Shown: in pieces, positions 4,759-64,000 of the stretch
Position numbering within the stretch: position 1 is the first letter of the stretch
Layout: every line of letters starts with the position of its first letter
NCBI GenBank assembly: GCA_964035545.1
Contig: OZ037766.1
Span: 13,754,722-13,818,721 of the forward strand
Length of the DNA stretch: 64,000 bases
Source of the DNA: Bugula neritina
Lineage: Eukaryota; Animalia; Bryozoa
Direction of reading: 5' to 3'
Position numbers and translations under genes: made by a program
Notes under the pieces: model-generated
What the model saw: the letters and a program-made list of their open reading frames with translations, nothing else
Database searches by the model: none
What the model was told of the DNA's origin: nothing

Positions 4759-5066
4759 ATTAACATTGCAGTAAAATAATCCTAGTCAGAAAATATAATA
4801 CTTTCTAACAAGTAATTATTGTGTTCATTTTTTAATAGCTATGGCAACAGTAAAAGAGGCACTCTGTATAAGAAGAATAATTCCAGCATGTTGTGCAGTG
4901 GAAAGTTTATTAAAGCAAAAAATGATTTTAACAATAACATAATTAAAACATAAAAGGTGTTTGTATGCAATGACCATTTGACTATATTGATAAAAACATA
5001 TATATATCATATGTCTACATTTAATTAAAAGGTGTAAATAAAGAGCTATAGTGTAGTAACAGATGC

Positions 5067-5068
<2 letters not shown>

Positions 5069-5150
<82 letters not shown>
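5069..5150. repeat. (TA)n microsatellite
   Basis: Pure TA run of about 41 units. Confidence 0.98.
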
Positions 5151-5151
<1 letters not shown>

Positions 5152-5517
5152 TATTAGTCTCAACCATTGGATATGTTAATGGTTTATTTTTAGTATTTAT
5201 ATGATAGTTAGAATCTAATAAGACCATAACTAAATGACAGACTATTATTACAGATGGCTAATATTTAAGCTAGAATAACTATGAGACTTGCATGCCACTA
5301 TTTTGGCATATAGTAACTGCTGCAGTTAGTATTCTCTTCTACAAAACAAAAATAATAAAATAAAAAAGAACAAAATAACTACTCATTTGCATTAAACCAG
5401 TAAGGAATGGAATATGTTTACGAATTTAAAGTGAAAAAATAGTTAATATTTTTGCATTAAGCTGGTTACAAATGCCAAAGTTTGCAAGAAAATGGTGAAA
5501 GGAAAGACAATAATTAC

Positions 5518-13149: not shown

Positions 13150-13986
13150 TTTAAAGATAAATAGCCTCAATGACAACCTTCTCAAAAATATAGAAAACTT
13201 TTATATATGAGTTTTGTACAATACCAAATGTTTTTTACAACAAAATAATACAAATTATAATGTTTTAAATTTTAGGTCACGTTTGTAACAACGATTGAAA
13301 ACGAAGTATAAAAACTGGTCAAAATAACGTCTTTGGGTTAGAGAGTTAGTAAAATCAAAAGAGATAAATTCAAAAAGCACCTCTACTAGTACTTGACTTT
13401 CATTTTAATAATAATTTTAATACTTATACAGATATTTAATTTTATCGTTATACTTATGCTGTCAATAATTATAAATGAACCAATTGGCAAATACAATGAT
13501 AAATAATTCATGATAGTTAAAATTGATCTTATAGTTATAGTTAAACGTAATCATAATGTTAATGTTATACTTACTCTTAGTCTTAGTCTAAGTCTTATAC
13601 TTATAGTTATAGTATAACTGAGTTATACTTATAGTTGTACCGTAACTGTAAGTGTAAGGGTAATAGTAATACTTATAGCTATATTTATACTTATAGTATT
13701 AGTTATTGTTATACTAATTTAAAATTATTTTGACTTTCAACTTGAACTACCACTTGGCCTTGGGTCTTGAAGTTGAACTTTGAAGTAAACCACACGTCGT
13801 CGGTCGTAGAACTAGAAATATCAGTATTATCATTACCAAATCATCATCATTATGAAATAAAACTCAAACTCATCAGTCATCATTATCATCACCGTGATGA
13901 TGATGCTGATAATCACGAAACATGAAGATATTTAGATAATCATAACGAATATGACTATGAGTATGAACTTGAAGATCACTTCCAAG

Positions 13987-14257
13987 TGTAGTAAATTGTG
14001 TAACTACTATGCGTGGGTTCCTAGCTTGTAATTATGTCTATTTATCTACACCAATAAAGTATTTAGGTAAAAGTTTCCAAGTTTATTTACTACTAATTAT
14101 ATAAAAGATACAGCACGTACACAGATTAGAGATTACATCCTCGCTTAGTTAGCGCGCTCTCTCTACTGCAAAACTACTACTAACTGAGGCCTATCACGTG
14201 ACGCACTTGGATAGGCTGAAGGAATACGGGGGACGCGCGCATTACGTCCTTACTACA
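13987..14257 (-). repeat. 3' LTR of element A
   Basis: Direct repeat of 21272-21542; TG...CA ends; AATAAA on the - strand; TCACGTGA motif. Confidence 0.97.
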
Positions 14258-14297
14258 CCGCCCCCCCCCAGCAGAAAGCCCTACTTTCTGATAACAC
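14258..14297 (-). promoter_or_regulatory. Polypurine tract and adjacent conserved hairpin, element A
   Basis: G-run on the - strand abutting the 3' LTR; CAGAAAG-ccta/c-CTTTCTG stem-loop at 14272-14290, also present in element B. Confidence 0.85.
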
Positions 14298-14614
14298 AGA
14301 TACAATAATTTCGAACATAAAATGTTATAAAACTATATAAAAAAAACCGAGAGAGCGTGTGGTACATAAAAGAAAAACATTGCTATATACAGTAGTAAGA
14401 AACATATACATACATAAAAAAAATATAACAGTAAATGTACAATGGCACCGGCGGGAGGCACTATAAGGGAATAGTTTGTAGAGGTAGAGCTGTATACTGG
14501 TAGGTTACTATATTGTTACACTGAGTAATTGTCTGTGAGCACTAGCGTGAGGAGGGTCTGTACTGGGGCACCACCTGCTGTACCATCACGGATAGGAAAA
14601 GAGGGACATCACCT

Positions 14615-15703
14615 TCAAGCACTTCCTTTCATTCGGGCTACAGAGGCAGAGAGGGCCCGGAGTTCTGATGCGGCGGCGGAGATTCTCGGTGTCAGTCTTT
14701 GCACCTCTTTCTCTAATTCTCGTATCCGCTCTTCTGCCTCGCCTAGATTCCTGGCGGGGGCAGAGTGTCGATTGGGGGATGAAGATGGCCAACTCCGCTT
14801 ACGAGACGGCCTCGGGGAGACAGGGGGGGAGGGACGCCATCGCTGTGGTATATCGATGCGTCGTAACACGACTCTTGGTATAGAGTCGGGGCGAGGCACT
14901 GTGCGTGCGGGGGGTGAGGAATGGGATATGCGGGGTTTCCTATATCCGGGTGGTTTAGGGCAGGGTCCCTGTGTGATGGTCCTGGGTGCGGGGAACTCCT
15001 GGCGCAGCCGTTCATATCGAACTGGGTCTGATATGAACGGTCGGATGAGATTAAGGAATTGTGGAAAGGAGGGTTCGTCGACTTCGAATAGGTGTCCAAT
15101 ATGGCATCCCATGGTTCGTTGGTGACGGAGGATGTAGTCCCTGTGATAACTATATTCACCACAGGGACAAAAGGTGGTGAAGTAATGTTGGGGAATATGA
15201 ACTCGGAGTCTTCGTGGGGTAGTGAAGTGAAGCTGGCATAAACGGCAGGTGGTGCATTGGTCATCTCCTTTGTGCTCTCGTATCAGTGTTTCCGTATCTG
15301 TTGTAACCCAGCATGATTGTTGTAGGAGTGCCTCCGGAAGAGTAGTGGGAACGGGTTCCTCGTTCCAAGCCATTTCTAGTGACGGCATGTCACCAGATAG
15401 AGGAGAGAGAGCGGTATCTAAAAGAGCAGAATTACTGTTAGATCGGATATGATCTTTACACCATAATTCTGATGACAACCGACTGTTACTAGTCTGAGAG
15501 TCATACATCTTTTCAGATAGCACTCGCGGGACTGAGTCGTGTCGTGTAGACTGACAGAGAGACATAGTGTCAAGCTCCAGATCTAGTAGATCGTCGGCCA
15601 TCTTTATGTTCTCGTCGCCTTTCACGTAGGACTCAGTCCCCAGTAGTTGTGATTCAATCAAGGCGATTAAATCAGAACTGACTGATGGTAGACTGGTTTC
15701 CAT
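14615..15703 (-). CDS. ORF3 of element A: C2H2 zinc finger, second atypical Cys/His finger and C-terminal coiled coil (362 aa)
   Basis: CRLCQLHFTTPRRLRVHIPQH (C-x2-C-x12-H-x3-H), then FCPCG...H...C, then heptad-like LGEAEERIRELEKEVQRL. Lies between the pol stop and the PPT; homologous to 45717-46430. Confidence 0.85.
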   Translation of the reverse strand: METSLPSVSSDLIALIESQLLGTESYVKGDENIKMADDLLDLELDTMSLCQSTRHDSVPRVLSEKMYDSQTSNSRLSSELWCKDHIRSNSNSALLDTALSPLSGDMPSLEMAWNEEPVPTTLPEALLQQSCWVTTDTETLIREHKGDDQCTTCRLCQLHFTTPRRLRVHIPQHYFTTFCPCGEYSYHRDYILRHQRTMGCHIGHLFEVDEPSFPQFLNLIRPFISDPVRYERLRQEFPAPRTITQGPCPKPPGYRKPRISHSSPPARTVPRPDSIPRVVLRRIDIPQRWRPSPPVSPRPSRKRSWPSSSPNRHSAPARNLGEAEERIRELEKEVQRLTPRISAAASELRALSASVARMKGSA

Positions 15704-15768
15704 GAGTGGAAATGTTAGCTCAGAGCAAGCTTACCTGAGAACCCGGTATTTGTAATCATACTCGGCGT

Positions 15769-18700
15769 TCAAGCTTGGATGTCCGTGGATTGAGTTTGAA
15801 TGCGTCTTCCCTTGACAATGTCAGCGTACGAAAAGACTGGGCAGCGTGGTTGTTGCGCACGGCTGGAACTATTTGCCCCGGGCGCAGTAGTTTTGTTTAC
15901 TACTCCGCCTTCGCAAAAGTTGAGATTTCCGTGGTGTTCACAACTCCCACGCTTTGCTGCCAGTCCTTCCGTACGGCGCCCAGCTAGACTTTCATAATTG
16001 CCGTTTGTAACACGGTCACATATGTAGTCTTGAAGGTATGCTGGGGGTTGTCTAGTACGCTGTCCCCGTTCCAGGGGAGGTGACGTATCAGCTGGAGAGG
16101 GAGTTGTAGCTGTTGGTTGGGGCGGCGTACTCACTGGTGGGCTATTTTGCTCCACCTGTGGTGTTTCTGGCCCGCCGTTGGTGGTGGTGTTCCCCTCTCC
16201 GCTGTTGTCTCCAGATGGAGCCCCTCCCACGGGGGGGTTTTGCACTTCCGGACGCGGATGCGGAACCGGAAGTGGTGGGGGTAGACTTGGTACTGGGGGC
16301 GGTGGGCGCACTTCCGTTGGTGGGAGTGGCGTCTCCTGCCTCACCAAGTCCTCTCCCCGCGGCACGACCATTTCGTACTCGGGTCCATGCCGTTGCCGCC
16401 CACGCGTTACTGTCTGCCTCCTGGGCTCCAACAACGGGGGGGCTGCTCCTGCTGCTCCTGGGCTAGCCCAATACGGTTTCAAGCGGGTTTCGTTCTGGAC
16501 AGAGACCTGTCCAGATCGCTCCAACTTGTACGTATGATTGGGCATAGCCTCAACTACTACGTAGGGTCCCACAAACTTAGGCTGGAGCTTAGCCGCTTGT
16601 CCTCGACGCCTACGGTAGTTGACCATCCACACCCAGTCCCCAGTTCGATAGAGAGGTGGTTCCTGAGAGTCCTCTCGCCGTACCTGCCACTGCTTCGCCC
16701 GCAGTATTTCGTGTGCGGCCCTCAGGTCCTCTATCAATTTACTGGCATACTCGTGGATGGTATAGTCTTGCTCTGGGATGTGGTATGTGAGGTGGTCAGG
16801 CACTCGCGTCTCTCGACCGAGCATCAGGAGGTTAGGGGTTTCCCCCGTACTGGTGTGTGGTGTACTACGGTAGGCCCGCATGACTTGCGGCAGTACCGTA
16901 TCCCACTCCTCCTGACCCCGGCCGAGGAGCAGACTGCGCAGTGCATCGCCCAACATGCGATTGTTGCGTTCCACCACCCCGTTGCCCTGAGGATGGTACG
17001 GGGTGGTCCTGCTTTGGTTTACTCCCCAGAGGCGGCAGAGGTCGCTCAACAGTTGGGACTGGAATTGAGCCCCCTGGTCCGAATGTATTTGCTCAGGTAG
17101 TCCAAGATAGCAGAATACATTTTGATCCAGCACCCTGGCCACTGTGGGGGCGGACGCATCTGGAATAGCCAGGGCATCCGCCCACCGTGTAAAGTGGTCG
17201 GTTAATACTAGGATCCAACTGTTTCCTCTGGGGGTGACGGGCATGGGTCCGACTAGGTCGATAGCTACCACCTGCCACGGCCTTCCAGCATATAACCTAC
17301 GCCGTCCCGCTTCACCAGGGAGACGGCCATGCTTGCTGGCCTGGCAGATTTCGCATTGTTTGACTCTACGCCGCACCTCACGCTCCATGCCGGGCCAGTA
17401 CCACCGGAGTCGTAACTTGGAGAGCACCCTGCTCGCCCCGGCGTGGGCTTGCTTGTGGGTGTCCCATACTAACTCCCGGCGTATGGCGGCTGGGCAGATC
17501 ACCCTCTTCCTGCCGTACTGGTTGTTGTGAGCAGCCACTGTGATGGTCAGCAGACCATCTGGCCCGATCCGCAGGGAGTCCCAACGTTGGCAGTACGACC
17601 GTAACTCGGTGCATCCCTGCCGCAGTTGTTCTTCACTGGGTCGTCGCCCCTCCTTTTTGGCACGATATACGTCGGCTACCACTCCAGGGAGGTCCTCCTG
17701 GAGTCTTCGTAGCTCCCTAACGTTATCAGCCAAGACAGGATTGGCACGGAGGCGTTGGATAGCCTCCGGGGGCGTAGCGGCCTTCTGTAGGAGTTGACCC
17801 TGGTCCCAGTCATACTCCGTTTCAGAGTGGTTCAGTGCTCTCAACTCGGATTTTGGAGGACCTCCGTCCCTCTTCTCGATGTTGAGGCACTGTTTACACC
17901 CCTCGTCCGGTCGCCGGCTCAGTCCATCAGCATTGCCGTGTTTCTTACCGGGTCGGTGCTCGATCCGGTAAGAAAACTCAGCTAGGACCTCGAGCCATCG
18001 GGCGACTTGGCTGGACGGTTCTGCTCTCTTACATAACCAAATCAAGGAGGCGTGGTCGGTCCGCAAGCGGAACTTCCTGCCGTATAGATAAGGTCTGAAA
18101 TGCTTCACTGACTTGATTACTGCCAGCAATTCCTTTCGGGTAGTGCAGTAATTTCGTTCAGTGGGCGAGAGAGACTTACTGTAGTAGGCCACGACTACTT
18201 CGCGGCCCTCCTGCACCTGGGACAGCACAGCGCCGACATTTTGGTCACTGGCGTCAGTATCGAGGATGTACTCCAGGGCAGGGTCTGGGTAGGCCAGGAT
18301 AGGGGCCTCCAGCAGGCGGCCTTTGAGGCAGTCGAACGCTCTCTGTTCGACGGGAGTCCACTGCCAGGTCACCCCCTTTGCGGTGAGCCGGTTTAATGGC
18401 TGCGCTACCCCCGCAAAGTCTGGTATGTATTGCCTGTAATACCCTACCAGCCCCAGGAAAGCCCGTAGCCCGGTCAAATCCTGGGGGGTTACCCAATCTT
18501 CTATAGCTCGTACCTTTTCAGGATCCGTCGCCACACCGTGACGGCCGACGATGTGCCCCAGGTACTTCACCTCTGGCTGCAAGAGAGCGCACTTGGAGGG
18601 TTTGAGCTTCAGATTGGCGCCTCGGAGTCGATCGAAGACCTCCCGCAGACGGCTGACGTGTGTCTGAAAGTCTGGGGAGATCACGATGACGTCGTCGAGG

Positions 18701-21210
18701 TATACTAGCAGTGTCTTCCAGTGGAGTCCACTGAGGACCTGTTCCATGAGCCGCTGGAACGTGGCGGGGGCAGAAGTCAGTCCGAAGGGGAGGACTTTCC
18801 ACTTCCATAAGCCGTCCCGCGTGATGAACGCCGCCTTCTCCTGGGCGTCTGGGCTGAGGGGGACCTGCCAATAGCCGCTCAACAAGTCTAGCGTACTGAA
18901 GTACTTGCTGCCGGCTAAGGCGTCCAGAGATTCGTCGATCCTGGGTAAGGGGTAGGCGTCCTGTATGGTCACGCTATTGAGCTTGCGATAATCCACACAG
19001 AACCGCCAACTGCCGTCTTTCTTTCGGACCAGAACGACCGGTGAACTCCACGCACTATGTGCTGGCTCGATGAGGCCGCGGTCCAAAAGATCCCGGACTT
19101 GTTGGCTGACCTCCTTTTCCTTCTCGGGTCCCAGCCTCCTAGTGGGCTGCCGAATAGGGGTAGTCCCTGCAGCCAGCGGTATCTCATGACGGACGGCCGT
19201 GGTCAGGCCGACGTCATGGTCCCCACTGCTGAACACGTCGCTATATTCACGTAGCAACTGAGCCATAGTCTGGCGTTCCACGTTGCCCGTGCAGCCGTTA
19301 CACGCTGCCTGGTATAGCTCTTTGACGTGTGATGGGACGGTCCCCCGCCTAACTGACGGGCTCTGTCGGGGACCTTCCGTCGCAGCTCCCAGCGACGGCC
19401 CTATATCCTCCTCCTGGATGGAGTGGAAGCGACCCAGCATGGATCCTGACGGTAATTGTACCGCTTCGGAGAAGGGGTTGACACACTGCACCAAGATCTC
19501 TCCTCGGTCAGTCAGCCGGTTTAGACTGCTGGCGAGTTGGATTCTAGTGTGCGCACCTTCGACAACCCCTAGCCCCGAGAGTTGGCTATTGTTCACTCTG
19601 CAGTGAACGGTAGCCCGGGAGCGGCCGGGTATAGTACAGTTGCGTACTACCTGCACACCTCCCGCTAGAGGACGACCGAACTTGTCGACACAGGTGAGTT
19701 CTTTGCCGCCCATTAGCATGGCTGACTTGCTAAAGTCAATATGGCACCCGTGTCTCTTCAAGAACGGCATCTCCAGTGGGCTGATGACGAAGGTTTCCTG
19801 AATGGCCTGGTCGCGGACGCGCCCAGCCAATTCTATGATACCGTAGAAAGGAATCCGTGACCCGTCAGCTAGGGTGCCCGGTTCCCCGGTATAGGGGGCT
19901 AAGGCTCCCCTCTCCTTGAGAGGGAGGGTGTCGAAGACCCGACGGCTGAGGAGATTAGTGGTACACCCGGAGTCTAGCAGGAAGGTGACAGCTTTACCGG
20001 CCACCTTCCCTGGCAAGAAGTAGCTGCCTCCGTGAGGTTGTACCCGTACTCCCCCAGCGTGCTCGGTCTCGGCCGAACGGGGCTGTGCCCGTTTGTTCCG
20101 CGGTTTGCGGGGCCGGTGAGAGTTTCCTTGCGGGGAGGCGTTCTGATCCTCCCCGATGCCCTGAGGGGCCTCGCTGGTCTGTTCCATTACTGGTAACGGA
20201 CTGAAGCGGTTGGTGAGAGGCAAAGAGAAGGGGTCTCGTGGTCGACCCGGTTGGCTGGTTCGGCGAGGTGTTTGCCATTGACGGGGGGTGTGTTGCTGGG
20301 CCCGTACGGGCTCCTGGCGACATCCACCCCGTTTTCCTCTCTGTGTGTGCCCGCGGAGCTCTGGGGGTCTCCGGGGAGGTTGTGGTTTCTGCTGCCGTTT
20401 GAATCGTGGGCCGCTCAGGTGGCGGTGTCCCTGGTTGCCGCTTTCCTTTCGTCGCATCATAGGTCTGGGGGGTTTTGCTGCCGTCTTCTTACTCTTCCTT
20501 GAGTGGTTGTGTGTTATCGTCGCCACCAGTTGTCCCAGCCTAGTCATCAAGCGGCTTATCTCCATCTCTATGGGGGGTTTAGTGGTCGTGGCAGCTGTGT
20601 GGACCGGATGGTCTGGTTCCCTAGAGGTCTGGGGAGTGGTCTCTTCCGTCTTATAGAGTCGCTCGGCTCCAGCGTAGGCTTTGTTCTCCTGGATTGCAGC
20701 CTCGATTGTGGTCACTCCCTTGGCTTGTAACTGGTGGTGGAAGTCCAAAGAGTTGAGAGACTGTACAAAAGCTTCGAACGTGTAGTGCCGTCTGTGTGTT
20801 TCTGGCAGATCGCTATACGCGGTCCGTGCCAGTCTCTGCACCAGAGTGGCGTGGTCAGAAAGCGGTGTACCTGTCTTGCGGAGTAATCCTCGCAGCCTGG
20901 ACTTGGCGACGGCAGCGGGCATGCCAAAACGGGCCCGTAGTGTAGCAATGATCCCGTTTATGCTAGGCCTCCACCCGTACGGCTTGGCTTCTCCCGTCAG
21001 TGCCATCCGTAGTTTCATAAGGGTTACTCTTGGCGGCCATCTTGTAATGGCTGCAGCTTCACGAAATTCTTGAACGAATTGTTCAATATCCTCGCGGCCT
21101 GTGAACACGGGAACCTCCAACGTGTTCCTATATACCTCCTCTCCAGCTCCGAGAGGGCCTATAATAATGTTCTGCTCACCTCCTTCCATTGAAGTTACTC
21201 CCTCGTCCAT
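15769..21210 (-). CDS. Single-frame Gag-Pol polyprotein of element A (capsid, decayed NC, protease lacking ILG, RT, RNase H, integrase)
   Basis: 1813-aa ORF: LLDSG (protease), WRFCVDYRKLN / LPFGL / YLDD (RT), DTDAS / ELLA / TDH / ADGLSR (RNase H), H..H..C..C, IDLVGP / HSDQG / VERNN (D,D-35-E integrase) and a GPY module. Confidence 0.97.
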   Translation of the reverse strand: MDEGVTSMEGGEQNIIIGPLGAGEEVYRNTLEVPVFTGREDIEQFVQEFREAAAITRWPPRVTLMKLRMALTGEAKPYGWRPSINGIIATLRARFGMPAAVAKSRLRGLLRKTGTPLSDHATLVQRLARTAYSDLPETHRRHYTFEAFVQSLNSLDFHHQLQAKGVTTIEAAIQENKAYAGAERLYKTEETTPQTSREPDHPVHTAATTTKPPIEMEISRLMTRLGQLVATITHNHSRKSKKTAAKPPRPMMRRKESGNQGHRHLSGPRFKRQQKPQPPRRPPELRGHTQRGKRGGCRQEPVRAQQHTPRQWQTPRRTSQPGRPRDPFSLPLTNRFSPLPVMEQTSEAPQGIGEDQNASPQGNSHRPRKPRNKRAQPRSAETEHAGGVRVQPHGGSYFLPGKVAGKAVTFLLDSGCTTNLLSRRVFDTLPLKERGALAPYTGEPGTLADGSRIPFYGIIELAGRVRDQAIQETFVISPLEMPFLKRHGCHIDFSKSAMLMGGKELTCVDKFGRPLAGGVQVVRNCTIPGRSRATVHCRVNNSQLSGLGVVEGAHTRIQLASSLNRLTDRGEILVQCVNPFSEAVQLPSGSMLGRFHSIQEEDIGPSLGAATEGPRQSPSVRRGTVPSHVKELYQAACNGCTGNVERQTMAQLLREYSDVFSSGDHDVGLTTAVRHEIPLAAGTTPIRQPTRRLGPEKEKEVSQQVRDLLDRGLIEPAHSAWSSPVVLVRKKDGSWRFCVDYRKLNSVTIQDAYPLPRIDESLDALAGSKYFSTLDLLSGYWQVPLSPDAQEKAAFITRDGLWKWKVLPFGLTSAPATFQRLMEQVLSGLHWKTLLVYLDDVIVISPDFQTHVSRLREVFDRLRGANLKLKPSKCALLQPEVKYLGHIVGRHGVATDPEKVRAIEDWVTPQDLTGLRAFLGLVGYYRQYIPDFAGVAQPLNRLTAKGVTWQWTPVEQRAFDCLKGRLLEAPILAYPDPALEYILDTDASDQNVGAVLSQVQEGREVVVAYYSKSLSPTERNYCTTRKELLAVIKSVKHFRPYLYGRKFRLRTDHASLIWLCKRAEPSSQVARWLEVLAEFSYRIEHRPGKKHGNADGLSRRPDEGCKQCLNIEKRDGGPPKSELRALNHSETEYDWDQGQLLQKAATPPEAIQRLRANPVLADNVRELRRLQEDLPGVVADVYRAKKEGRRPSEEQLRQGCTELRSYCQRWDSLRIGPDGLLTITVAAHNNQYGRKRVICPAAIRRELVWDTHKQAHAGASRVLSKLRLRWYWPGMEREVRRRVKQCEICQASKHGRLPGEAGRRRLYAGRPWQVVAIDLVGPMPVTPRGNSWILVLTDHFTRWADALAIPDASAPTVARVLDQNVFCYLGLPEQIHSDQGAQFQSQLLSDLCRLWGVNQSRTTPYHPQGNGVVERNNRMLGDALRSLLLGRGQEEWDTVLPQVMRAYRSTPHTSTGETPNLLMLGRETRVPDHLTYHIPEQDYTIHEYASKLIEDLRAAHEILRAKQWQVRREDSQEPPLYRTGDWVWMVNYRRRRGQAAKLQPKFVGPYVVVEAMPNHTYKLERSGQVSVQNETRLKPYWASPGAAGAAPPLLEPRRQTVTRGRQRHGPEYEMVVPRGEDLVRQETPLPPTEVRPPPPVPSLPPPLPVPHPRPEVQNPPVGGAPSGDNSGEGNTTTNGGPETPQVEQNSPPVSTPPQPTATTPSPADTSPPLERGQRTRQPPAYLQDYICDRVTNGNYESLAGRRTEGLAAKRGSCEHHGNLNFCEGGVVNKTTAPGANSSSRAQQPRCPVFSYADIVKGRRIQTQSTDIQA

Positions 21211-21252
21211 GATGTTCTAATACTTCTCATTGTTCTCATACAGTAGCTAGAA

Positions 21253-21270
21253 ATCCCACTGCTGCCACCA
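21253..21270 (-). promoter_or_regulatory. Primer-binding site complementary to the tRNA-Leu 3' end, element A
   Basis: The - strand reads TGGTGGCAGCAGTGGGAT one nt after the 5' LTR; metazoan tRNA-Leu(AAG/TAG) ends ...ATCCCACCGCTGCCA-CCA. Confidence 0.85.
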
Positions 21271-21271
21271 C

Positions 21272-21542
21272 TGTAGTAAATTGTGTAACTACTATGCGTG
21301 GGTTCCTAGCTTGTAATTATGTCTATTTATCTACACCAATAAAGTATTTAGGTAAAAGTTTCCAAGTTTATTTACTACTAATTATATAAAAGATACAGCA
21401 CGTACACAGATTAGAGATTACATCCTCGCTTAGTTAGCGCGCTCTCTCTACTGCAAAACTACTACTAACTGAGGCCTATCACGTGACGCACTTGGATAGG
21501 CTGAAGGAATACGGGGGACGCGCGCATTACGTCCTTACTACA
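21272..21542 (-). repeat. 5' LTR of element A
   Basis: Direct repeat of 13987-14257. Confidence 0.97.
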
Positions 21543-23437
21543 CAAGTTCATGATGATGACGGTGCGTCATGCTTATGATCATAATTTTAATTTTCATCAT
21601 TTATTCTAATTCAATTTCATGATCAATAAGGTTAAATCATAGTCAATAACTATAACATTAACTATAAGACTAAGTACAAGTCATAGTCACTATGACTATG
21701 CAATTGTATCAGTATCAGTAAGACTATCGCTATCATCTATCAGTATCACTATAATAGTAATACTGATAATCATACTCACTGATACTGATGGTGATACAAT
21801 TACTTATACTATTAGTATTACATGTGAATGACTATAAGTATAAGTCATAAGAGTTAGAGTAAGACTAAGTTTTCAAGTTAATTTTTTTTATACCAATAAT
21901 GATAATGTAAGTAATGCTCATCATTGTTATAATTATTATATTAAATAAATAAATGTAAGATTTTAATTTATTCATAATGACTTTAAGTCAATATAAATAT
22001 GTGTATTGGAGTTTAGACTTAATTATAATATTGATAATTATTGCAGGTCATTTCATACACATGTCATTTTTTTACCCATCATAAATTAACTAAAAAGTAT
22101 ATTTTTTTTATATCTATTTATTCTTTGATGTAAGTATCAAACTAAGACTCCCTAACTCTAAGTATTAGACTTACCCTTAATCTTGGAGTTGGTCTTGGTT
22201 TAAGTATAACTGTAAGGTTAAGGGTTGGTAAAACAATTTAACTGTGACTATATCTGTGGTTGGTTCTATAATCATAGTGTATACAGTAAAAGTATTAGTG
22301 TGAGAAAAAGGCAAATCAGTAGGATTAAAGTGATAATCTATTGGATTTTTGGACACACAGCCTATGTTTTAATTCAAAGCTTGATATTGAAGTTATTCAT
22401 AGCCATTACTCATTGCTGTCTTGCACCTTCACTTTTTCTTTGGGGTTATCAATATCATTTTCACTTTGACTTGACTCAATGATATCGAGATTGTTGTCTC
22501 ATTTAATATACTTACACTTGTAGTCTACTTATTAAAAAATCGGAAAATTAACAGCAAATTAAAGTAGTGCATGACTATATTTGATCGGCTGAAAGAATTT
22601 CATGCTAGGTATTTATCATGAAGAATGTTATATTTTTTACGAAAGTTATTTACCTTTCTGTGTAAATTATTTATTACACACTAGCATCAGTTTAGTGGTA
22701 TGGCAGGGAGTTTTTGAAAGACAATAACAATATTCCTGAAGTTAAACATGTGTAACTTGTAACTTGCATTTTGCTACAAAACTACAAATTATATGTACTT
22801 AACGCAGCATAGTTGTTTTTGATCTTTTGTGACCTCTATTTCTTTTATATACATTATATTTTAAAGCGGTTAAAAATCCATATATTTGAAGATTTATAAC
22901 AAATGTAAATCATGAGCTTCTAATTAATTTTGAGTCAACATTTGGTACACTTTTTAGGTTCTTTCAACAAACATTACGCACTTGCGTTATACACTAAACG
23001 CTCTCCATGTTTTAATAGATTTTTCCTAAAGCTAGTCTCGTAAACGTTGTATAATGTACATCATGATCACCATCAAATCTGTGGTAACTTAAGTTAGGAG
23101 CATTTGGGGTCATACTTTTTTTGTAAATTATCATATTTAAACAGTCTACTTCGGCTTTGCATGCATCTCTTATTTTATTGCTTCTGACACTCAACCAGGT
23201 CACTAATATGTATTTAATGCTAGTTAGGATTGTTATGACTCTTGGTAGATTTTTGCAGTACTTACTTAGCTTTAAACTATGCTTATATTACTGAGAACAT
23301 GCACTTTGTAGCAAGCTTTTGATGGTCTGTTTTAATTGCAAAAATAGAAGTGATATTGTAAACTCAAGACATGTTTTTTTAACTCTGCATATTTCTACTC
23401 TTATGAGTTGTAATATGTTCATAGAGTTTCTTATGTA

Positions 23438-43275
<19,838 letters not shown>

Positions 43276-44324
43276 AACAATATCAAAGCTTAACATTTAT
43301 TTTAAATGCCATGCAGTGCAAGGAGTGATTGTGAAACATGTGCAGGGAGTCTCAACGTAAACTTTGTCAATGATGTTCTTTGCTTTTTTGAAGTTCTCAG
43401 TATATCTTATAGAATATTACACTTCAAAAAGCTCCTTTAGTAGCTATGTCTAGGTTTAAGGCATTTGCTTAGTGGATCGGACTCATTCTGACTCTAAAAT
43501 AGAGTAATCTGAAACTTTTCTTCCCCAATATGGGTTTTGTTATTGAAGCTGTTTGCTTGTTTTGGAATTTCTAGAATAGCTAGCTATTATAATTTATGTA
43601 CAGATCCGTTTTTACTCCTATTACTCTCATTCCAAATTATTTGGTTTGGATTATAATTTAACTAGATAAAATACAAGTGGAACCAGCTCAAGCACTATCT
43701 TATAATATATGTGCTAGCTATGCTATATTGTAGCTACATTTAATATAAGTGTGAGGCATTATAAACTATGTTATGTTCCCTTTTAGTACATAGAGTTCGC
43801 TACAAATCAGTATTTTTGTATAGCTGTTAGGTAGACCATTTCATTTTATTTCCACTAACTTATTTAATTACAAAATAGAAACTATCTAAAAACTTGGCTC
43901 TGGTAGTTTAGAAAATTTGCAATTTCAACAGTGTTTTGCACTTTCAACAGTGTTTTGCACTTTCAACGAAAATCAGTTTTACTCAACAAATCAGTTTATG
44001 TAGACTAAAACACAACCAAGCTTGATGTTATATTGAAAATTTTGATTCATAAAACATTTTGTACAAATAAATTTAAAATTCCCTGGGAAATAATAATTTC
44101 AATAGAGAAAAAGCAGCAGATTAAAACTGAATAACTAAACACAATTGTTTCTTTGTATTTCAAATATCTTAGGCATCTGTTCCTTGTGTTTCACTGCTGC
44201 TATTTTATTTATTTAAAAACCAATTAACTAATTATAAGGTTGCTAGCATTGCTATTTTTTGAACCAGCAGCTACTATAAAAAATAGCAGTCAGTTATAGC
44301 TAAGAAAACTGTTTTACTTTGTAG

Positions 44325-44326
<2 letters not shown>

Positions 44327-44382
<56 letters not shown>

Positions 44383-44428
44383 TATACACATATATATACA
44401 CATATATATATACATATATATATATATA
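44327..44428. repeat. (TA)n / (TATATATACACA)n microsatellite
   Basis: Directly visible. Confidence 0.95.
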
Positions 44429-45072
44429 ATTGTTTATGGACTTTGCTTGCCTCCTTGATTGTGAATAGTGACCCCTGTTGTCAACCAGATGTATATAATT
44501 TAGAGTTGTGCTCCCACAGCACTTTTGCAATGAGAAAACTCATGTCATCAAATATTATGCAAAGTGGGGTAGGATATATCCAACCATGAAGTGAGGGTGC
44601 TGGCTGTAGACTCAGCCATCACTCTTAGTGAGAACTCTTTTGACATCTATGCTACTCTACATGACATACTAGGAGAGATTAGTCCGGTTTACCACAGTCA
44701 CATTAAATTTTCCAAGGATGGCTCCCAGCAACACAGACTTCTTTGTCTCCCTTTCTTTCCTCTGCTACCAAGGTCAAAGGTCACTGTTTCTCCAAACACC
44801 ATCTTCTTTCTTTTATTTGTATGTTTGATGTTGATTGTTGTAATATTATTGGCAGAATCCAAAATCCATGTTTATAGTTTATAATATTATATTATAACTT
44901 GTAACATTGTCACAAATTCTACTTTATAAACTGTTATAATATATATCACTCTCTTTTGTTATTTAGCCTACACTTATAATTTGTATAGCACACAAGTCTA
45001 TTGCAAGTACTATTGCGCAATAATTGTTTAAATTTTTAGTCACTCTTTATTGTGCTAATGAATAGTGCCTAT

Positions 45073-45424
45073 TGTAGTAATTTGTGCAATTACTGAGCGT
45101 GAGTTATTTACTTGCGTACAGTTAGCTGGTTATTCTGTTATCAATTACTAGGGTAGCTGTCGAGTAATTATATTTATTATCCACAATAAAGCATAAACCA
45201 AACATCACATCAAATTATCCTATACAAGAGTCAACTACTAACACATGTTACTACTACAAGCCTCCGCTTACAACAACGTGGTATAATGTTAATAACCCGG
45301 GAAGTGTCACGTGAATCGGAAGCATATCTTCCGGAGCTGCTAATTGGTTGCTACATAAGAGTCTAAGTATTCCAAGAGTAGGGAGAGGGCGATTCCTGTA
45401 TTTGTACTTGCACTACTCACTACA
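45073..45424 (-). repeat. 3' LTR of element B
   Basis: Direct repeat of 49986-50337; TGTAGT...ACTACA ends. Confidence 0.97.
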
Positions 45425-45463
45425 CCGTCCCCCCCAGCAGAAAGCCCTACTTTCTGATAACAC
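45425..45463 (-). promoter_or_regulatory. Polypurine tract and conserved hairpin, element B
   Basis: ccgtcccccccagcagaaagccctactttctgataacac, nearly identical to 14258-14297. Confidence 0.85.
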
Positions 45464-45716
45464 AATAAAAAAACACATAATGAAAAACTATACAATAATC
45501 CAAAAAGAAAAACATACATAAGTAAACCCACAAAGAGTAAGAAGAGAAATAGTTAAACACGACAACATTTACATTAGAAGACAACAGGGTGATCGATCAC
45601 ACACATCTAGTCAGCTATTAAGAGAGAGGGTGCTTACCAGCACGCGGGCCAATGTCGGAGCGCTCGTCACATTCCAAACGAGTATCGCTCAACGAAGGTG
45701 CCTACCCCAGGCATTC

Positions 45717-46430
45717 TCATTGGTTGGACTCTGATTCTTGTAGCGACCGTGCTCTGTGTCGAGCCTGTCGGGCCCGTAGCCGCCTCTTCAGTCGCCCCAC
45801 TGAGTCCTTCAACTGGTATAGACCTGTCGTCGTATCCAGCAGGTCAGGGGCAAGTTGTGTGAACTCGGCTTGTAGTCTCATAAGCCGCTCTTCTACGTTA
45901 GCCAGCTGGCTAGGCCTTGGTGGGGTTGTAGTGGTCTCCGTTAGAGGGGATATTGTTGTTTCTTCTACTTCTGGGGTGTTGCTAGGGTTGACGGGGGTAG
46001 GAGGTGGGCCCTGAACCATAGGGGACTTATGGCGGGCAGATAGTAGCAGTACGTGAAACCCTGACATTAGTGCGGCCAGGGTGATAGCCTTCCTGATGAC
46101 TGGCTTGATGGCATCCAGGTATAGGGGGAAACTGTCTTCATCAACAGTGTGGTTCTCTCCGGCGAAGCAGCTTAGCTTATGTACTGTCACGGGATACGGG
46201 TAGACGTCGTGGAACCCGCAGGGACAGAAGTGGAGCAGGAAATGGGCGTCTACATGTAAACGCAGGGAGCGGTGTGACGGGCACTCCTCAAAGCAGACCT
46301 GGCAGGTTCGGTGTGGTCCACTGGGTCCCCAGGCTTCTTCAATTCTCCTCTCTGTCGTGGGTGACACCCAACGGTGTCGTCGGCGGAGCACTACAGGTAT
46401 GCCATTCTCCATTACAGGCTCTTCTTCCAT
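45717..46430 (-). CDS. ORF3 of element B: C2H2 zinc finger, second Cys/His finger and coiled coil
   Basis: CQVCFEECPSHRSLRLHVDAH, FCPCG...H...C, VDEDSFP and LANVEERLMRLQAEFTQL. Frame is open from 46523; first ATG at 46430; candidate splice acceptor ctactctttcag ends at 46484. Confidence 0.82.
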   Translation of the reverse strand: MEEEPVMENGIPVVLRRRHRWVSPTTERRIEEAWGPSGPHRTCQVCFEECPSHRSLRLHVDAHFLLHFCPCGFHDVYPYPVTVHKLSCFAGENHTVDEDSFPLYLDAIKPVIRKAITLAALMSGFHVLLLSARHKSPMVQGPPPTPVNPSNTPEVEETTISPLTETTTTPPRPSQLANVEERLMRLQAEFTQLAPDLLDTTTGLYQLKDSVGRLKRRLRARQARHRARSLQESESNQ

Positions 46431-46792
46431 AGACAGAGAGGTTGGCTGGTCCCGTGACCGGGAGGTGGTCACTCGAGTGTGATCTGAAAGAGTAGCAGTG
46501 TTAAAGATTATACACTGAGGCACCGTCGGCGTGTACAGCCTGACCGGTACTCTGTTCAGTTACACTCGTGAGATTCAGGCTAATGAATAGTTGATGGAGA
46601 ACACACTCGCTATGACAGATTATTTAAAATCAAAGTCGACGTGTATTCCCACCACTGTTTATCATTATCGAATCTCCAGCTAGCTAGTGTAGCTAAGCTG
46701 ACTGATGCAGTCTAGTTATCGTACCAAAAACATAATTAACTCACCCTTCGATCCAGAATAGTAAGACATTTTGGAATGAGAGTGGTAAATGA

Positions 46793-49051
46793 TTACTGTT
46801 TACTGGCACGTCTACTCTCGACTGCATCAACATAGGAAAAGATCGGACAGCGTGGTTGTGAAACGTGACTAGGGCTTTTCACTTCCAGCGGATGAATCTC
46901 GTGTGAGATTCCGCCGAGGCAAAAGTTGAGATTCTCGTGGTGATCACAACTCCCACGGCTCTTTGCCTGTTTTCCCATGCGAGGCCTCTCTAGACTTTTG
47001 TTACTGCCGCTTATACCGCGGTCACGTACACAGTCTCTGAGACACGCTGGAAGTTGCCTAGTGTGTGGTCCTGGTCCTATGTTGGTATCTCCTTGCGGAG
47101 CCCCTCCCACGGGGGGTTTTTGCACTTCCGGACCTGTTTCTGGTTCCGGAAGTGGTGATGATGGCAGGCTTGACGTTGGGGGCGGTGAGCGCACTTTCAA
47201 GGACGGAAGTGGCCTTTCTCGCCTCGCCAAGTCTTCCTGACGTGTCATGGAGGTGTTTCCGGCCAGGTTGACAGTCTCCGCCTGCCGAGACCTTCTCGCA
47301 CAATGCGTCTGCCGCCCCGCTTCACCAGGGAGACGGCTATGCTTGTTGGTCTGGCAGACTTTGCACCGTCTCACTCTGCGTCGGATATCCCGTTCCATGT
47401 TAGGCCAGTACCACCGGAGTTGTAGCTTGGTGACCACCCCTTGGACTCCTCCGTGAGTCTCCTCGTGGGTGTCTTGTATCAGCTTCCGGCGGATGGCAAC
47501 TGGGCAGACAACCCTCTTCCTGGCTGGCTGTCTGCTGTTGGCGGCCAAGGTCATGGTTAGCAGACCATCTGGCCCGACCCGCAGAGAGCTCCAACGTTGA
47601 CAGTACAGCCGTAACTCGGCGCATCCCTGTCGCCGTTGTGTACTACTGGGTCGTCGCCCCTCCTGTTTCGCTCGGTACACGTCGGCTACCACCCCAGGAA
47701 GGCATTCCTGGAGCTTCGGCAGCTCCCTAACGTTACCAGCCCATACAGGTTTGGCGCGGAGGCTCTGGGCAGCCTCCGGGGGCGTGTCAGCCCTCTGTTG
47801 GAGTAGCTGAGCAGGGGCGGTCCTCGCCGCCCGTGGTACCTCACGGCAGCCTGCTTTATTTAGGCGGGCTCCGTGGTCTGTGTGGCTGAACGCCTCACTG
47901 TACCCATGTGGCAACCTAGCCATAGCCTGGCGCTTCCCGTTGCCTGTGCAGCCACGCGTCCCTGGAGGAGGGGAGGCGTGGGTTGGGACGGTCCTCCGCC
48001 CTCGAGACGAGCTCTGCTGAGGACCTTCCGTCGTAGCTCCCGACGACGGCCCAATGGCTTCCTCCTGGACAGGATGGAAGCGACCCAGCATGGATCTGGG
48101 TGGTAGGTCTACTGTCTCTGAGAAGGGGTTGACACACTGCACTGAGATCTCTCCTTGTCCCGTAAGCCGGCTAAAGCTATGGGCAAGTTGGACTCTCGAG
48201 TGCGTACTTTCGACAACTCCCAACTTAGAGGTTTGGCCACCGTCTACCTTGCAGCGGACGGTAGCCCGGGAGTGGCCTGGTATAGTACAGCTCCGTACTA
48301 CCTGCACTGCTCCCGCTAGAGGACGACCAAACTTATCGACACAAGCGAGCTCCTTGTCGCCCATGATCATCGCAGATTTACTGAAATCGATGCGACAACC
48401 GTGTCGTTGTAAGAATGGCATCCCGAGGATAGCATCCTCGTTGAGCTGCCCGACGATAAACGTCTCTTGGATGGCCTGGTTACGGACGTAACCAGTTAGC
48501 TCAATAATGCCGTAGAAGGGAATGCAGGACCCGTCTGCCAGGGTGCCATGATCCCCCTCATACGGTGCCAACCTGTCCTTGACCTTAGCGCTGAGGGTGT
48601 CAAAGAACTGACGGCTAAGGAGGTTGGTGGTGCAGCCTGAGTCCAGGAGGAAGTTGGCAGGCTTGCCGGCTAGCTTTCCTGGTAGGAAGTAGCTACTTCC
48701 GTGTGGCTGCAATTGTGTGTGCCGTGGTTGCACCTCCCTCGCTGTGGGTCGAGGGGTCCACGGTTGGCGGCGACTATTGACCAGCTGCCGAGGTTGGGGC
48801 GGTACGCCTTGCGGCGCCTGTACCGTTTCCCTCGCAGGCTCTGTGGTCAACCGTCTGCCGGCTCCGTGTTGGTGCCGGAGTGGCGTAGAGGACCCAGGTG
48901 GCGAGTGGCTGGAGCCTACTCGCCGCGGGGGTCGCCACTTCACAGCATCTCCGCGCGGCGCCCAGCGGGGCGACAGACGCGCGGGCCTCCCTGGGTAATT
49001 CACAGACGGCCCGCAGGAGGTGGGAACATCTGCGGGCCGTGGTAGTTTAAC
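46793..49051 (-). CDS. Internally deleted pol frame of element B (protease, RH-IN linker, integrase HHCC domain, C-terminal tail), probably reached by a -1 frameshift
   Basis: LLDSG...AILGMPFL protease; no YLDD, no RNase H and no DDE core; THEETH...CKVC retained; open throughout and in the -1 frame relative to gag. Confidence 0.9.
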   Translation of the reverse strand, partial: VKLPRPADVPTSCGPSVNYPGRPARLSPRWAPRGDAVKWRPPRRVGSSHSPPGSSTPLRHQHGAGRRLTTEPARETVQAPQGVPPQPRQLVNSRRQPWTPRPTAREVQPRHTQLQPHGSSYFLPGKLAGKPANFLLDSGCTTNLLSRQFFDTLSAKVKDRLAPYEGDHGTLADGSCIPFYGIIELTGYVRNQAIQETFIVGQLNEDAILGMPFLQRHGCRIDFSKSAMIMGDKELACVDKFGRPLAGAVQVVRSCTIPGHSRATVRCKVDGGQTSKLGVVESTHSRVQLAHSFSRLTGQGEISVQCVNPFSETVDLPPRSMLGRFHPVQEEAIGPSSGATTEGPQQSSSRGRRTVPTHASPPPGTRGCTGNGKRQAMARLPHGYSEAFSHTDHGARLNKAGCREVPRAARTAPAQLLQQRADTPPEAAQSLRAKPVWAGNVRELPKLQECLPGVVADVYRAKQEGRRPSSTQRRQGCAELRLYCQRWSSLRVGPDGLLTMTLAANSRQPARKRVVCPVAIRRKLIQDTHEETHGGVQGVVTKLQLRWYWPNMERDIRRRVRRCKVCQTNKHSRLPGEAGRQTHCARRSRQAETVNLAGNTSMTRQEDLARRERPLPSLKVRSPPPTSSLPSSPLPEPETGPEVQKPPVGGAPQGDTNIGPGPHTRQLPACLRDCVRDRGISGSNKSLERPRMGKQAKSRGSCDHHENLNFCLGGISHEIHPLEVKSPSHVSQPRCPIFSYVDAVESRRASKQ

Positions 49052-49950
49052 CCTTGTGGGAGCTGAGGGCAGTCTTTCTGGAAATGTCCTGGCCTTCCGC
49101 ATTCCCAGCAGAAGTGGTGCCCCATGCCTGGTGATTGTACCTGCGGCCCGCTAGGCTCACGGGCAGTATCTACCTGGCTTGGGGAAGCTAATGTGGTGAC
49201 CAGTTTATCTAGCATGTCAGTCATCTGTGAGATTTTTGACGCTAGTGACATCTGGTTCACATTAGCCACCGCGGAGGGTTCCGCGTCTAATTCGGCGTGA
49301 GCAGTAGAGTGCTCCGTGGTCACCTGGCGGGAGGCCACGCGGTTGCGGTGCATATGAGTCGCCAAGAGGTAGGCTTCTCCCACCGCAAGTGCATCTTCGA
49401 CTGTGGTGACTCCCCTCGCTTGGAGTTGATGGTGGAGCCCCAAGTCGTTGATGGACTGCACGAAGGCATCATAAGTATACCTCTCACGGTGTACCGGAGG
49501 CAGATCGCGGAATGCAATCTGCGCTAGTGGGTACACCGTGGCAGCGTGCTCTTCTAGTGACGTGTGAGGATCACGCCGCATCCTCTGTAGACGGGCCCGC
49601 GCATCTATGGGAGAGATGCCAAAACGGGCCCGCAGGGAAGCAAAGATTCCGTCTATGTCAGGTCCCGCTCCGTACGGCTTAGCTTTGCCCGTCAGCGCCA
49701 TCCTGAGCTTTAGCAACGCCACCCTTGGCGGCCATTTTGCAATCTCCATCACATCCTGGAATTCTTGGATAAACTGCTCCACTGCTTCTTCGCCGGTGAA
49801 GGTGGGTGCCTTCAGCCGGTATCTATTTTCACCATGCTCTCTAAGAATTCTCACTTCTTCATCTAACACCACTGGTTCCACCGGTATATCAACATTATCT
49901 CTCTCACCTTCATTCAGTGGAATGGGTAGCTCCGTGCCGTCTTCTGCCAT
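49000..49950 (-). CDS. Gag of element B (capsid and CCHC nucleocapsid)
   Basis: Capsid region aligns with the element A N-terminus (FTG.E..EQF.QEF, WPPRV.L.KLRMALTG.AKPYG, LRARFG); CWECGRPGHFQKDC knuckle; ATG at 49950. Confidence 0.93.
   Translation of the reverse strand: MAEDGTELPIPLNEGERDNVDIPVEPVVLDEEVRILREHGENRYRLKAPTFTGEEAVEQFIQEFQDVMEIAKWPPRVALLKLRMALTGKAKPYGAGPDIDGIFASLRARFGISPIDARARLQRMRRDPHTSLEEHAATVYPLAQIAFRDLPPVHRERYTYDAFVQSINDLGLHHQLQARGVTTVEDALAVGEAYLLATHMHRNRVASRQVTTEHSTAHAELDAEPSAVANVNQMSLASKISQMTDMLDKLVTTLASPSQVDTAREPSGPQVQSPGMGHHFCWECGRPGHFQKDCPQLPQGLNYHGPQMFPPPAGRL
49006..49051 (-). promoter_or_regulatory. Putative -1 programmed ribosomal frameshift signal
   Basis: G_TTA_AAC in the gag frame (49051-49045), followed 4 nt later by a perfect 11-bp stem ACGGCCCGCAG / CTGCGGGCCGT with a 13-nt loop, inside the gag/pol overlap. 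Confidence 0.75.
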
Positions 49951-49966
49951 GACTGCTATACGCAAG

Positions 49967-49984
49967 ATCCCACCGCTGCCACCA
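49967..49984 (-). promoter_or_regulatory. Primer-binding site, tRNA-Leu, element B
   Basis: The - strand reads TGGTGGCAGCGGTGGGAT one nt after the 5' LTR. Confidence 0.88.
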
Positions 49985-49985
49985 C

Positions 49986-50337
49986 TGTAGTAATTTGTGC
50001 AATTACTGAGCGTGAGTTATTTACTTGCGTACAGTTAGCTGGTTATTCTGTTATCAATTACTAGGGTAGCTGTCGAGTAATTATATTTATTATCCACAAT
50101 AAAGCATAAACCAAACATCACATCAAATTATCCTATACAAGAGTCAACTACTAACACATGTTACTACTACAAGCCTCCGCTTACAACAACGTGGTATAAT
50201 GTTAATAACCCGGGAAGTGTCACGTGAATCGGAAGCATATCTTCCGGAGCTGCTAATTGGTTGCTACATAAGAGTCTAAGTATTCCAAGAGTAGGGAGAG
50301 GGCGATTCCTGTATTTGTACTTGCACTACTCACTACA
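49986..50337 (-). repeat. 5' LTR of element B
   Basis: Direct repeat of 45073-45424. Confidence 0.97.
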
Positions 50338-63457: not shown

Positions 63458-64000
63458 CTGAAATATTATTCAAAGAATTCTTTTAGGGAATCAAAACATT
63501 TCACTCAAATTCACAACACCTATTTAATTATTTAACGAGCAAATCAAATTCTCTAAGGCGCAAATGTTGACTGAAAAGAGCGATTGCTTACTTGAGGGTA
63601 AAATGAATACGCTTCACAACTAAAAAGTAACTTTGCAACAGGTGTCACAAAATTAATTAGCTATTAAGCCGAAAAAGCTGTTACAATTGGCGGAGAAAGT
63701 TGGTTATACAAGTTGTACTTTATTAATCATATTTGACCACTTAGATTTTAGGCTATGCCAGCCATTACAAAAATAAATTAATAGCAATTGTTGAACAGTT
63801 ATATTATTTCCAGGAGAATCACTCAGTATTTGTGACAGTTTTCTTGGCAAAATCTTTTATTCATTAATTGTTTTTTGTGAATTAAAAAAAGGTCAACATG
63901 AAGCTTCGTGCTTCATATATTATTTTAAAACTTTTGAATTGGATTGAAATTGGCGGGATTAAATATTTTCACTTACATTTTAACCAAAAATATGGTTACT

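Follow-up and report, generated by a model that had tools for sequence, protein, structure and literature searches.

Two young Ty3/Gypsy copies in the bryozoan Bugula neritina point to a probable, ordinary helper/dependent relation between retrotransposon lineages

Our analysis of a 64,000-nucleotide (nt) stretch of Bugula neritina DNA (contig OZ037766.1; hereafter the window, to whose positions all coordinates refer unless a comparison locus is named) concerns two related Ty3/Gypsy retrotransposons with long terminal repeats (LTRs), element A and element B, which carry reciprocal defects. An original prediction had taken the pair for a candidate bipartite, mutually complementing system. We find that an ordinary helper/dependent relation between lineages explains the pair better, and we give this reading a probability of roughly 60%: B would represent an old non-autonomous lineage, and A would be a young copy with a single open reading frame (ORF) and a recent protease lesion. 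Mutual complementation thus holds up in one half only. The dependence of B is supported by fixed deletions and by dN/dS ratios (ω) of 0.13–0.15, and the need of A for B is not supported, the protease gap of A occurring in no relative and its fused frame and cis signals being traits of the clade.

Comparison loci (L numbers) and proteins (P numbers) come mostly from short-read metagenome contigs of a bryozoan (B. neritina or a close sibling); L001 comes from an unrelated ENA metagenome. Of the 117 relatives that a query with B Gag yielded, nearly all are from two JGI samples, whose contigs are short; those long enough for checking are old copies (LTR-pair identity of 84% in L013 and 86% in L014), and young multi-copy families are likely to be under-assembled in them. 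Domain calls are Pfam profile matches, and ω was computed per domain and pairwise.

A repeat finder reveals two pairs of long direct repeats in the window, and no other such repeats, marking two elements that both lie on the minus strand (Table 1). The LTRs all start with TG and end with CA. As predicted, the LTR pairs show no mismatch (over 271 bp in A and 352 bp in B), the target-site duplications (CAAG and CTAT, respectively) are perfect, and the ORFs are open; A and B are both young copies. LTR ends, a 4-bp target duplication, a primer binding site (PBS), and a polypurine tract (PPT) are present in both, placing them in Ty3/Gypsy (Metaviridae). The domain order in A is gag, protease, reverse transcriptase (RT), RNase H, and integrase (IN), as in Ty3/Gypsy, and the order in B is the same minus RT/RNase H and the IN core. 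Nucleotide identity between the two is only 72–77% in collinear blocks, and they therefore belong to different families. At the protein level they are 52% identical in the capsid, 75% in the protease, 68% in the IN N-terminus and zinc finger, and 32% in ORF3, and the A capsid is no nearer to B than to other lineages. Neither copy encodes the full set of Gag, protease with its conserved motif, RT/RNase H, and integrase: B is without the enzymes, and A is without six protease residues.

The retained pol ORF of B contains only the protease and the IN zinc finger. RT, RNase H, and the IN core, whose absence had been noted correctly, are missing through two deletions relative to A, one that removed about 1.3–1.4 kb with RT/RNase H and one that removed about 0.9 kb with the IN core. 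In coordinates of element A, the breaks run from ~2424 to 3706–3745 and from ~4319 to 5189, with a further small loss in B at the first junction. The original prediction had asked whether these deletions are fixed across copies, and they recur in relatives that are 75–98% identical to B. In particular, a single collinear alignment covers 3670 nt of L002 and B at 98.4% identity, so that L002 has the same deletions and architecture, and L003/L004, L014, and L015, which are 75–86% identical to B depending on the block, break against A at the same places; both junctions are supported directly for L003 and L014. The deletions precede a radiation with synonymous divergence (dS) of about 0.5–0.7, as the junctions shared across L002, L003/L004, L014, and L015 imply.

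The proteins that remain in the B lineage have been under purifying selection. In the comparison of B with L003, ω is 0.13 for the capsid, 0.15 for the protease, and 0.13 for ORF3, with higher values for the IN N-terminus and finger (0.33) and for the junction and tail (0.53). In the comparison of B with its close sibling L002, the capsid differs by 11 synonymous and 3 non-synonymous changes and the protease by 9 synonymous and 1 non-synonymous changes. Purifying selection after the deletion indicates that, although polymerase and integrase are borrowed, the B lineage relies on a capsid, a protease, and an ORF3 of its own. Together, these comparisons support the view of B as a young copy within a Ty3/Gypsy lineage that is old and non-autonomous, in which the enzyme-gene deletion is fixed and which appears still to transpose.

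B was said to keep a capsid, a CCHC zinc knuckle, a −1 frameshift signal, and a complete protease, and all four are present. The knuckle in B Gag reads CWECGRPGHFQKDC, the protease matches 90 of 90 Pfam profile positions, and the frameshift site consists of an in-register G_TTA_AAC, a spacer of 5 nt, and a GC stem of 10–11 bp with a fold of −24 kcal/mol (z = −3.8). The signal is kept in L002, L003 (where the heptamer is shifted to GGGTTTA), L016, L018, and the distant L001, and across seven sequences the stem has two compensatory pairs in which both sides changed. The predicted signal is that expected of a programmed −1 ribosomal frameshift between gag and pol.

A presents the reverse picture. 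It retains RT (Pfam RVT_1), RNase H, and integrase (Pfam Integrase_H2C2 and rve), and it shows the three differences that had been ascribed to it. First, gag and pol form one 1813-aa ORF, with neither a slippery site nor a stem when both were looked for in the element. Second, the motif C-x2-C-x4-H-x4-C occurs in none of the frames of A; the position homologous to the knuckle reads RRKESGNQGHRHLSG, with all three Cys replaced, and the linker around it is 22% Lys+Arg. Third, six codons are missing exactly where all relatives read E-D-A-I-L-G, and the Pfam match to the protease covers only the first 38 of 90 profile positions. Other catalytic motifs are intact.

The protease gap is seen in A alone. 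It occurs in none of about 100 proteins that cover the site and is also absent from the readable fetched loci (L013, L016, L011, L019, L018, and L020, the last via protein P0297). The rest of the A protease has ω of 0.08–0.16 against five relatives and is as constrained as the A integrase core; strong constraint together with a gap unique to A is compatible with a lesion that arose late in the history of the lineage. The gap is thus probably recent, perhaps private to this copy or to a very young subfamily, and not a design feature. The clade protease profile matches the solved structures of retroviral-like aspartic protease 1 and DDI1 (E down to 4e-12), and the segment missing in A aligns with their conserved A-I-I-G strand. 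In retropepsins the segment at this site forms part of the wall of the substrate pocket and is followed by the helix that stabilises the dimer. From this alignment, we infer that loss of the six codons most likely inactivates the A protease. An AlphaFold model of the A protease from a 9-row alignment was uninformative (pLDDT of 42). The deletion junction, searched as a degenerate 27-mer, had no match in metagenome_contigs, an uninformative negative because a protease scan of that collection yielded only ~40%-identical relatives and no Bugula contigs; scans of viral_contigs with the A N-terminus and with the protease profile had no match, and an exact look-up of the A polyprotein returned no record.

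These observations bear on the possibility that A is autonomous as it stands, its shortened protease working or being replaced by other processing, its basic linker replacing the knuckle, and A itself being the helper that mobilises B. Identical LTRs, an intact 1813-aa ORF with all other catalytic motifs, the Lys+Arg-rich linker, and the proliferation of knuckle-less fused relatives are what such an element would show. The six missing residues, however, align to a strand and a glycine that all relatives share with solved retropepsin-like proteases, at a segment with known roles in substrate binding and dimer stability, and the profile match breaks off early in the domain that B retains in full. 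We regard autonomy of A in its present form as very improbable.

The fused gag-pol frame is a sublineage trait. It is found in A, L013, L020, P0115, P0119–121, P0265–267, and P0270 (L013 and L020 counted as fused once stops are ignored), and nine database proteins run from capsid through linker to protease in one ORF collinear with A. In the fused reading, the gag frame joins the pol frame a few codons past the old slippery site, and both heptamer and stem are lost in A and in its nearest relative, L013. A single Gag-Pol polypeptide is also known in the autonomous elements Tf1/Tf2 (PMC7175516). The zinc knuckle, in turn, is intact in some fused relatives (L013/P0264, L020, and P0121), decayed in A, P0120, and P0265–267, and deleted in P0115, P0119, and P0270. 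In a tree, A groups (support 85/88) with the knuckle-bearing P0121, L020, and P0264 group, a five-copy clade shares one knuckle loss, and P0120 and P0115 fall elsewhere, giving at least three losses.

The one observation that leans towards mutual dependence is that a lineage making only Gag-Pol has lost its knuckle repeatedly. In the two-part system that had been proposed, the fused, knuckle-less enzyme lineage and the gag-protease lineage would depend on each other: B-type elements would give free Gag with its nucleocapsid and active protease, and A-type elements would contribute the enzymes (RT, RNase H, and integrase) in the form of a capsid-tagged polyprotein, co-assembling in the same particles, which would thereby draw on two genomes in the manner of a segmented virus. 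Each element does have what the other lacks, the B lineage has kept gag, protease, and frameshift signal under selection, and the fused lineage has lost its knuckle at least three times yet spread. However, A alone among more than 100 relatives shows the protease gap, in a domain that is otherwise strongly constrained, fused relatives with both an intact knuckle and ILG exist (L013, L020, and P0121), single-ORF Gypsy elements are autonomous elsewhere (PMC7175516), and capsids that are barely half identical, and no closer to each other than to other lineages, give no sign of co-adapted parts. Mutual dependence thus comes down to a lesion in one copy and two features that are not defects elsewhere, and we consider it very unlikely.

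The shared cis signals, which would also be expected of a two-part system, do not single out A and B. Alignment confirms that the PBS, the U5 end, and the PPT region are common to the two elements and that the remaining LTR sequence is unalignable, as the original prediction had it; yet the whole clade, down to 40%-identical relatives, shares LTR ends, PBS, and PPT. Specifically, the 18-nt PBS, which we take to be complementary to the 3′ end of tRNA-Leu, is present in every clade member, including those with 40%-identical proteases (blastn-short); the LTR tips recur in most members with a readable junction; and the PPT and its upstream hairpin recur in six bryozoan loci with a readable end. 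On these comparisons, the cis signals appear to belong to the clade as a whole and not to A and B in particular. The hairpin, CAGAAAG - TAGGG - CTTTCTG, lies directly upstream of the PPT (14270–14292 and 45437–45459) and is kept in L002, L003, L013, L014, L018, and L019. Rfam and tRNA scans of the window had no match.

There is one small exception. The palindrome TCACGTGA lies in both otherwise unalignable U3 regions (14194–14201, 21479–21486, 45307–45314, and 50220–50227). It occurs 6 times in the window against 0.5 expected, 4 of the 6 being in the four LTRs, and is absent from contigs of other lineages except the B sibling L002 and one site inside L015. The palindrome is an E-box/CLEAR-like site. 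The youth of both elements together with this common palindrome is a further point that a two-part system would accommodate.

The full architecture is found in the clade to which the bryozoan elements belong. The search for a fully autonomous relative that the original prediction had called for succeeded as to architecture and failed as to a young intact host copy. L001 pairs an intact, knuckle-bearing gag with a pol of 1676 aa that includes ILG, RT, and IN. Among the bryozoan loci, L016/L017 encode capsid and knuckle in the same frame and then, shifted by −1, a protease with ILG, followed by RT and IN; L018 is arranged likewise, with RT and a partial integrase and no zinc-finger match. The presence of such canonical relatives in the same host data is a further argument against a two-part system.

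Canonical relatives also lend themselves to another explanation, that A and B are functionally unconnected: a different family of the clade, canonical and autonomous and located outside the window, would mobilise B, and A would be a newly inserted, already crippled copy. The modest nucleotide identity of the two elements, their unlike LTRs, cis signals that would fit any clade member, and their positions (23.5 kb apart, at separate intergenic sites flanking one host gene) are compatible with this explanation. Against it, no young intact canonical element was found in the host data, and the RT-bearing copies sampled all have A-like, not B-like, proteases. In the host data no protease nearer to B is continuous with RT (a pattern that a two-part system would also explain): such proteases either end early or skip to the IN N-terminus, and those that continue into RT are all nearer to A (73–84%) than to B. 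A-like elements are therefore plausible enzyme donors, and we consider the unconnected alternative unlikely.

We infer the following helper/dependent scheme. B would make its own Gag with a zinc knuckle, a fusion of Gag, protease, and IN zinc finger through the −1 frameshift, and an accessory ORF3 protein, and would be copied and inserted by enzymes from full-length relatives within its clade, whose primer tRNA site, polypurine tract, and LTR tips are the same as those of B. A would be a young copy of one such full-length family. In the A sublineage the frameshift would have become a fixed in-frame fusion, so that only Gag-Pol is made, and the zinc knuckle has been lost several times; the loss of protease residues in A probably arose in, or shortly before, the replication cycle that made this copy. 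The relation between the lineages would be one-way, from helper to dependent.

Several points weigh against this scheme. Knuckle-less fused elements have proliferated (five copies with a common loss), and the knuckle in that five-copy clade may be either dispensable or supplied in trans. The closest copy to A within reach (L013) is ~82% identical at the nucleotide level, so that the protease gap could be fixed in A's own young family. Identical LTRs and the common U3 palindrome would fit concurrent activity of A and B, perhaps under common regulation. The host data, being short-read metagenome contigs, are biased towards old, diverged copies; L016/L017 and L018 carry a few frame breaks; and the failure to find a young intact canonical element applies to those contigs and to a source genome searched only within the window.

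The per-domain dN/dS analysis that had been suggested also covers ORF3, which the original prediction did not mention, which both A and B carry, and which follows pol in the whole clade (L003:9446–10102, L016:5767–6675, L011:7682–8548, and L019:7657–8259). ORF3 has no Pfam family match and no significant Foldseek match against the PDB (the best being tandem C2H2 fingers, E ~0.7), and an AlphaFold model of A ORF3 is confident only for the finger region (residues ~120–240, pLDDT 81–94) and the last helix. Its sequences fall into an A-like and a B-like type, and in L019 a B-type ORF3 follows an A-like pol, which makes the elements mosaics.

Many independent internally deleted or chimeric forms occur in the host data (P0051, P0067, P0101, P0108, P0368, and L020:4010–4217), including fusions of gag to RNase H and of protease to the IN N-terminus, as well as a fused element that has lost IN; these forms fit frequent template switching in the clade. 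In L002, a 3′-end fragment (1–151) is inverted against the 5′ LTR (184–536), reflecting either two tail-to-head copies in opposite orientation or an assembly chimera. Recent recombination between A and B in the spacer and IN zinc-finger block was considered and dropped; block identities of 76–81% in all directions are equally explained by relaxed constraint in the B lineage.

Table 1. Features of elements A and B in the window
Element	Feature	Position	Strand	Remark
A	Target-site duplication CAAG	13983–13986		second copy 21543–21546; base-by-base check
A	3′ LTR	13987–14257	−	271 bp; TG..CA ends; identical to 5′ LTR
A	Polypurine tract and upstream hairpin	14258–14292	−	tract 14258–14269; small hairpin just upstream, clade-conserved
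A	ORF3	14615–15703	−	362 aa; C2H2-like fingers, long C-terminal helix; no Pfam match
A	Single gag-pol ORF	15769–21210	−	1813 aa
A	IN core	16840–17283	−	Pfam rve
A	IN zinc finger	17329–17493	−	Pfam Integrase_H2C2
A	RNase H	17974–18360	−	two Pfam RNase H models
A	RT	18547–19029	−	Pfam RVT_1
A	Protease domain	19651–20043	−	DSG active site present; six codons absent at ~19770/19771
A	Former zinc knuckle site	20407–20454	−	three Cys all replaced, His kept
A	Capsid	20566–21210	−	
A	Primer binding site	21253–21270	−	18 nt; 1 nt after LTR
A	5′ LTR	21272–21542	−	
B	Target-site duplication CTAT	45069–45072		second copy 50338–50341
B	3′ LTR	45073–45424	−	352 bp; identical to 5′ LTR
B	Polypurine tract and conserved upstream hairpin	45425–45459	−	
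B	ORF3	45717–46523	−	268 aa; 32% identical to A ORF3
B	Pol remnant ORF	46793–49102	−	769 aa; −1 frame relative to gag
B	IN-core deletion junction	47236–47258	−	~0.9 kb of A missing; common to L003 and L014
B	IN zinc finger	47336–47503	−	
B	RT/RNase H deletion junction	47804–47885	−	~1.3–1.4 kb of A missing; breakpoint region common to L002, L003, L014, and L015
B	Protease	48317–48730	−	DSG and ILG intact
B	gag	49000–49950	−	316 aa from first ATG
B	Predicted −1 frameshift signal	49006–49051	−	heptamer GTTAAAC 49045–49051; stem-loop 49006–49040
B	CCHC knuckle	49069–49110	−	
B	Primer binding site	49967–49984	−	one mismatch relative to that of A
B	5′ LTR	49986–50337	−	

The whole of B spans 5265 bp. 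The host gene between the elements is ch-TOG/CKAP5-like (XMAP215 family), with exons on the plus strand at ~23692–42636; it is flanked in antisense orientation by A, ~2 kb upstream, and by B, ~2.4 kb downstream. A 17-bp minisatellite of ~14 copies (33099–33336) lies within an intron of this gene. Further along the window, exons that by eye resemble an HGS/Hrs-type protein lie at 59603–63482 (minus strand; FYVE finger 63243–63482, UIM-like acidic helix 61399–61683), and a Gln/Pro-rich repeat ORF, also identified by eye, lies at 56393–57978 (minus strand). A short dispersed repeat with copies that are 71–79% identical (26736–26876, 57198–57338, and L003:3311–3485) is unrelated to the Gypsy elements and is probably a small non-autonomous element. 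The interiors of A and B are 56% G+C, the LTRs 38–39%, and the host DNA 30–35%. This contrast is a long-standing property and not a sign of recent arrival, because the old, decayed copies L013 and L014 are still GC-rich; recent horizontal arrival as the source of the high G+C was dropped, copies with 84–86% LTR identity being GC-rich as well.

Among animal LTR elements, the mouse IAP I-delta-1 type and ETn/MusD are internally deleted, very active elements that obtain enzymes from full-length relatives. B is likewise an internally deleted animal LTR element reliant on full-length relatives; unlike B, IAP and ETn/MusD are vertebrate endogenous retroviruses, and, to our knowledge, long-term purifying selection on a retained gag-protease is not a defining point for them. 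BARE1 and BARE2 of barley, to which the original prediction had appealed, are reportedly a helper/dependent Copia-type pair. In wheat, the autonomous lineage RLG_Cereba cross-mobilises the related non-autonomous RLG_Quinta (PMC11302176). As in both grass pairs, A and B represent related lineages with PBS, PPT, and LTR ends in common (here with the whole clade), the dependent partner contributes or uses Gag, and the dependent lineage is old and diversified. Unlike Quinta (gag only) and BARE2 (without working gag), B keeps gag, a predicted frameshift signal, protease, the IN zinc finger, and ORF3. Also unlike in these pairs, purifying selection acts on the capsid, protease, and ORF3 of B, the host is a bryozoan, an animal and not a grass, and the helper is a candidate only. 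A looser likeness is to the TR-GAG elements of plants, which, like B, are short LTR elements with normal cis signals and a Gag without polymerase and which, unlike B (5.3 kb, with protease, integrase fragment, and ORF3), are shorter than 4 kb and have a single gag ORF (PMC4350172). A, for its part, resembles the autonomous elements Tf1/Tf2 of Schizosaccharomyces pombe and Ty5 in encoding one Gag-Pol polypeptide with no stop or frameshift; in those elements excess Gag arises post-translation (PMC7175516). Unlike those elements, which have an intact protease, A is without the protease ILG segment, and its fusion is derived within a clade that uses frameshifting, with the slippery site and the stem now erased.

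Mutual dependence, if true, would make A and B the first "segmented" LTR retroelement, with relevance to the origin of multipartite viruses, but the evidence falls short of it. What the comparisons do support is a case, in an animal, of a Gypsy lineage that has lasted long without being autonomous and in which purifying selection has kept capsid, frameshift signal, protease, and an accessory ORF; an element with a borrowed polymerase can thus still need particle proteins of its own. They also support a sister lineage that swapped a programmed frameshift for a permanent fusion and then repeatedly lost its zinc knuckle.

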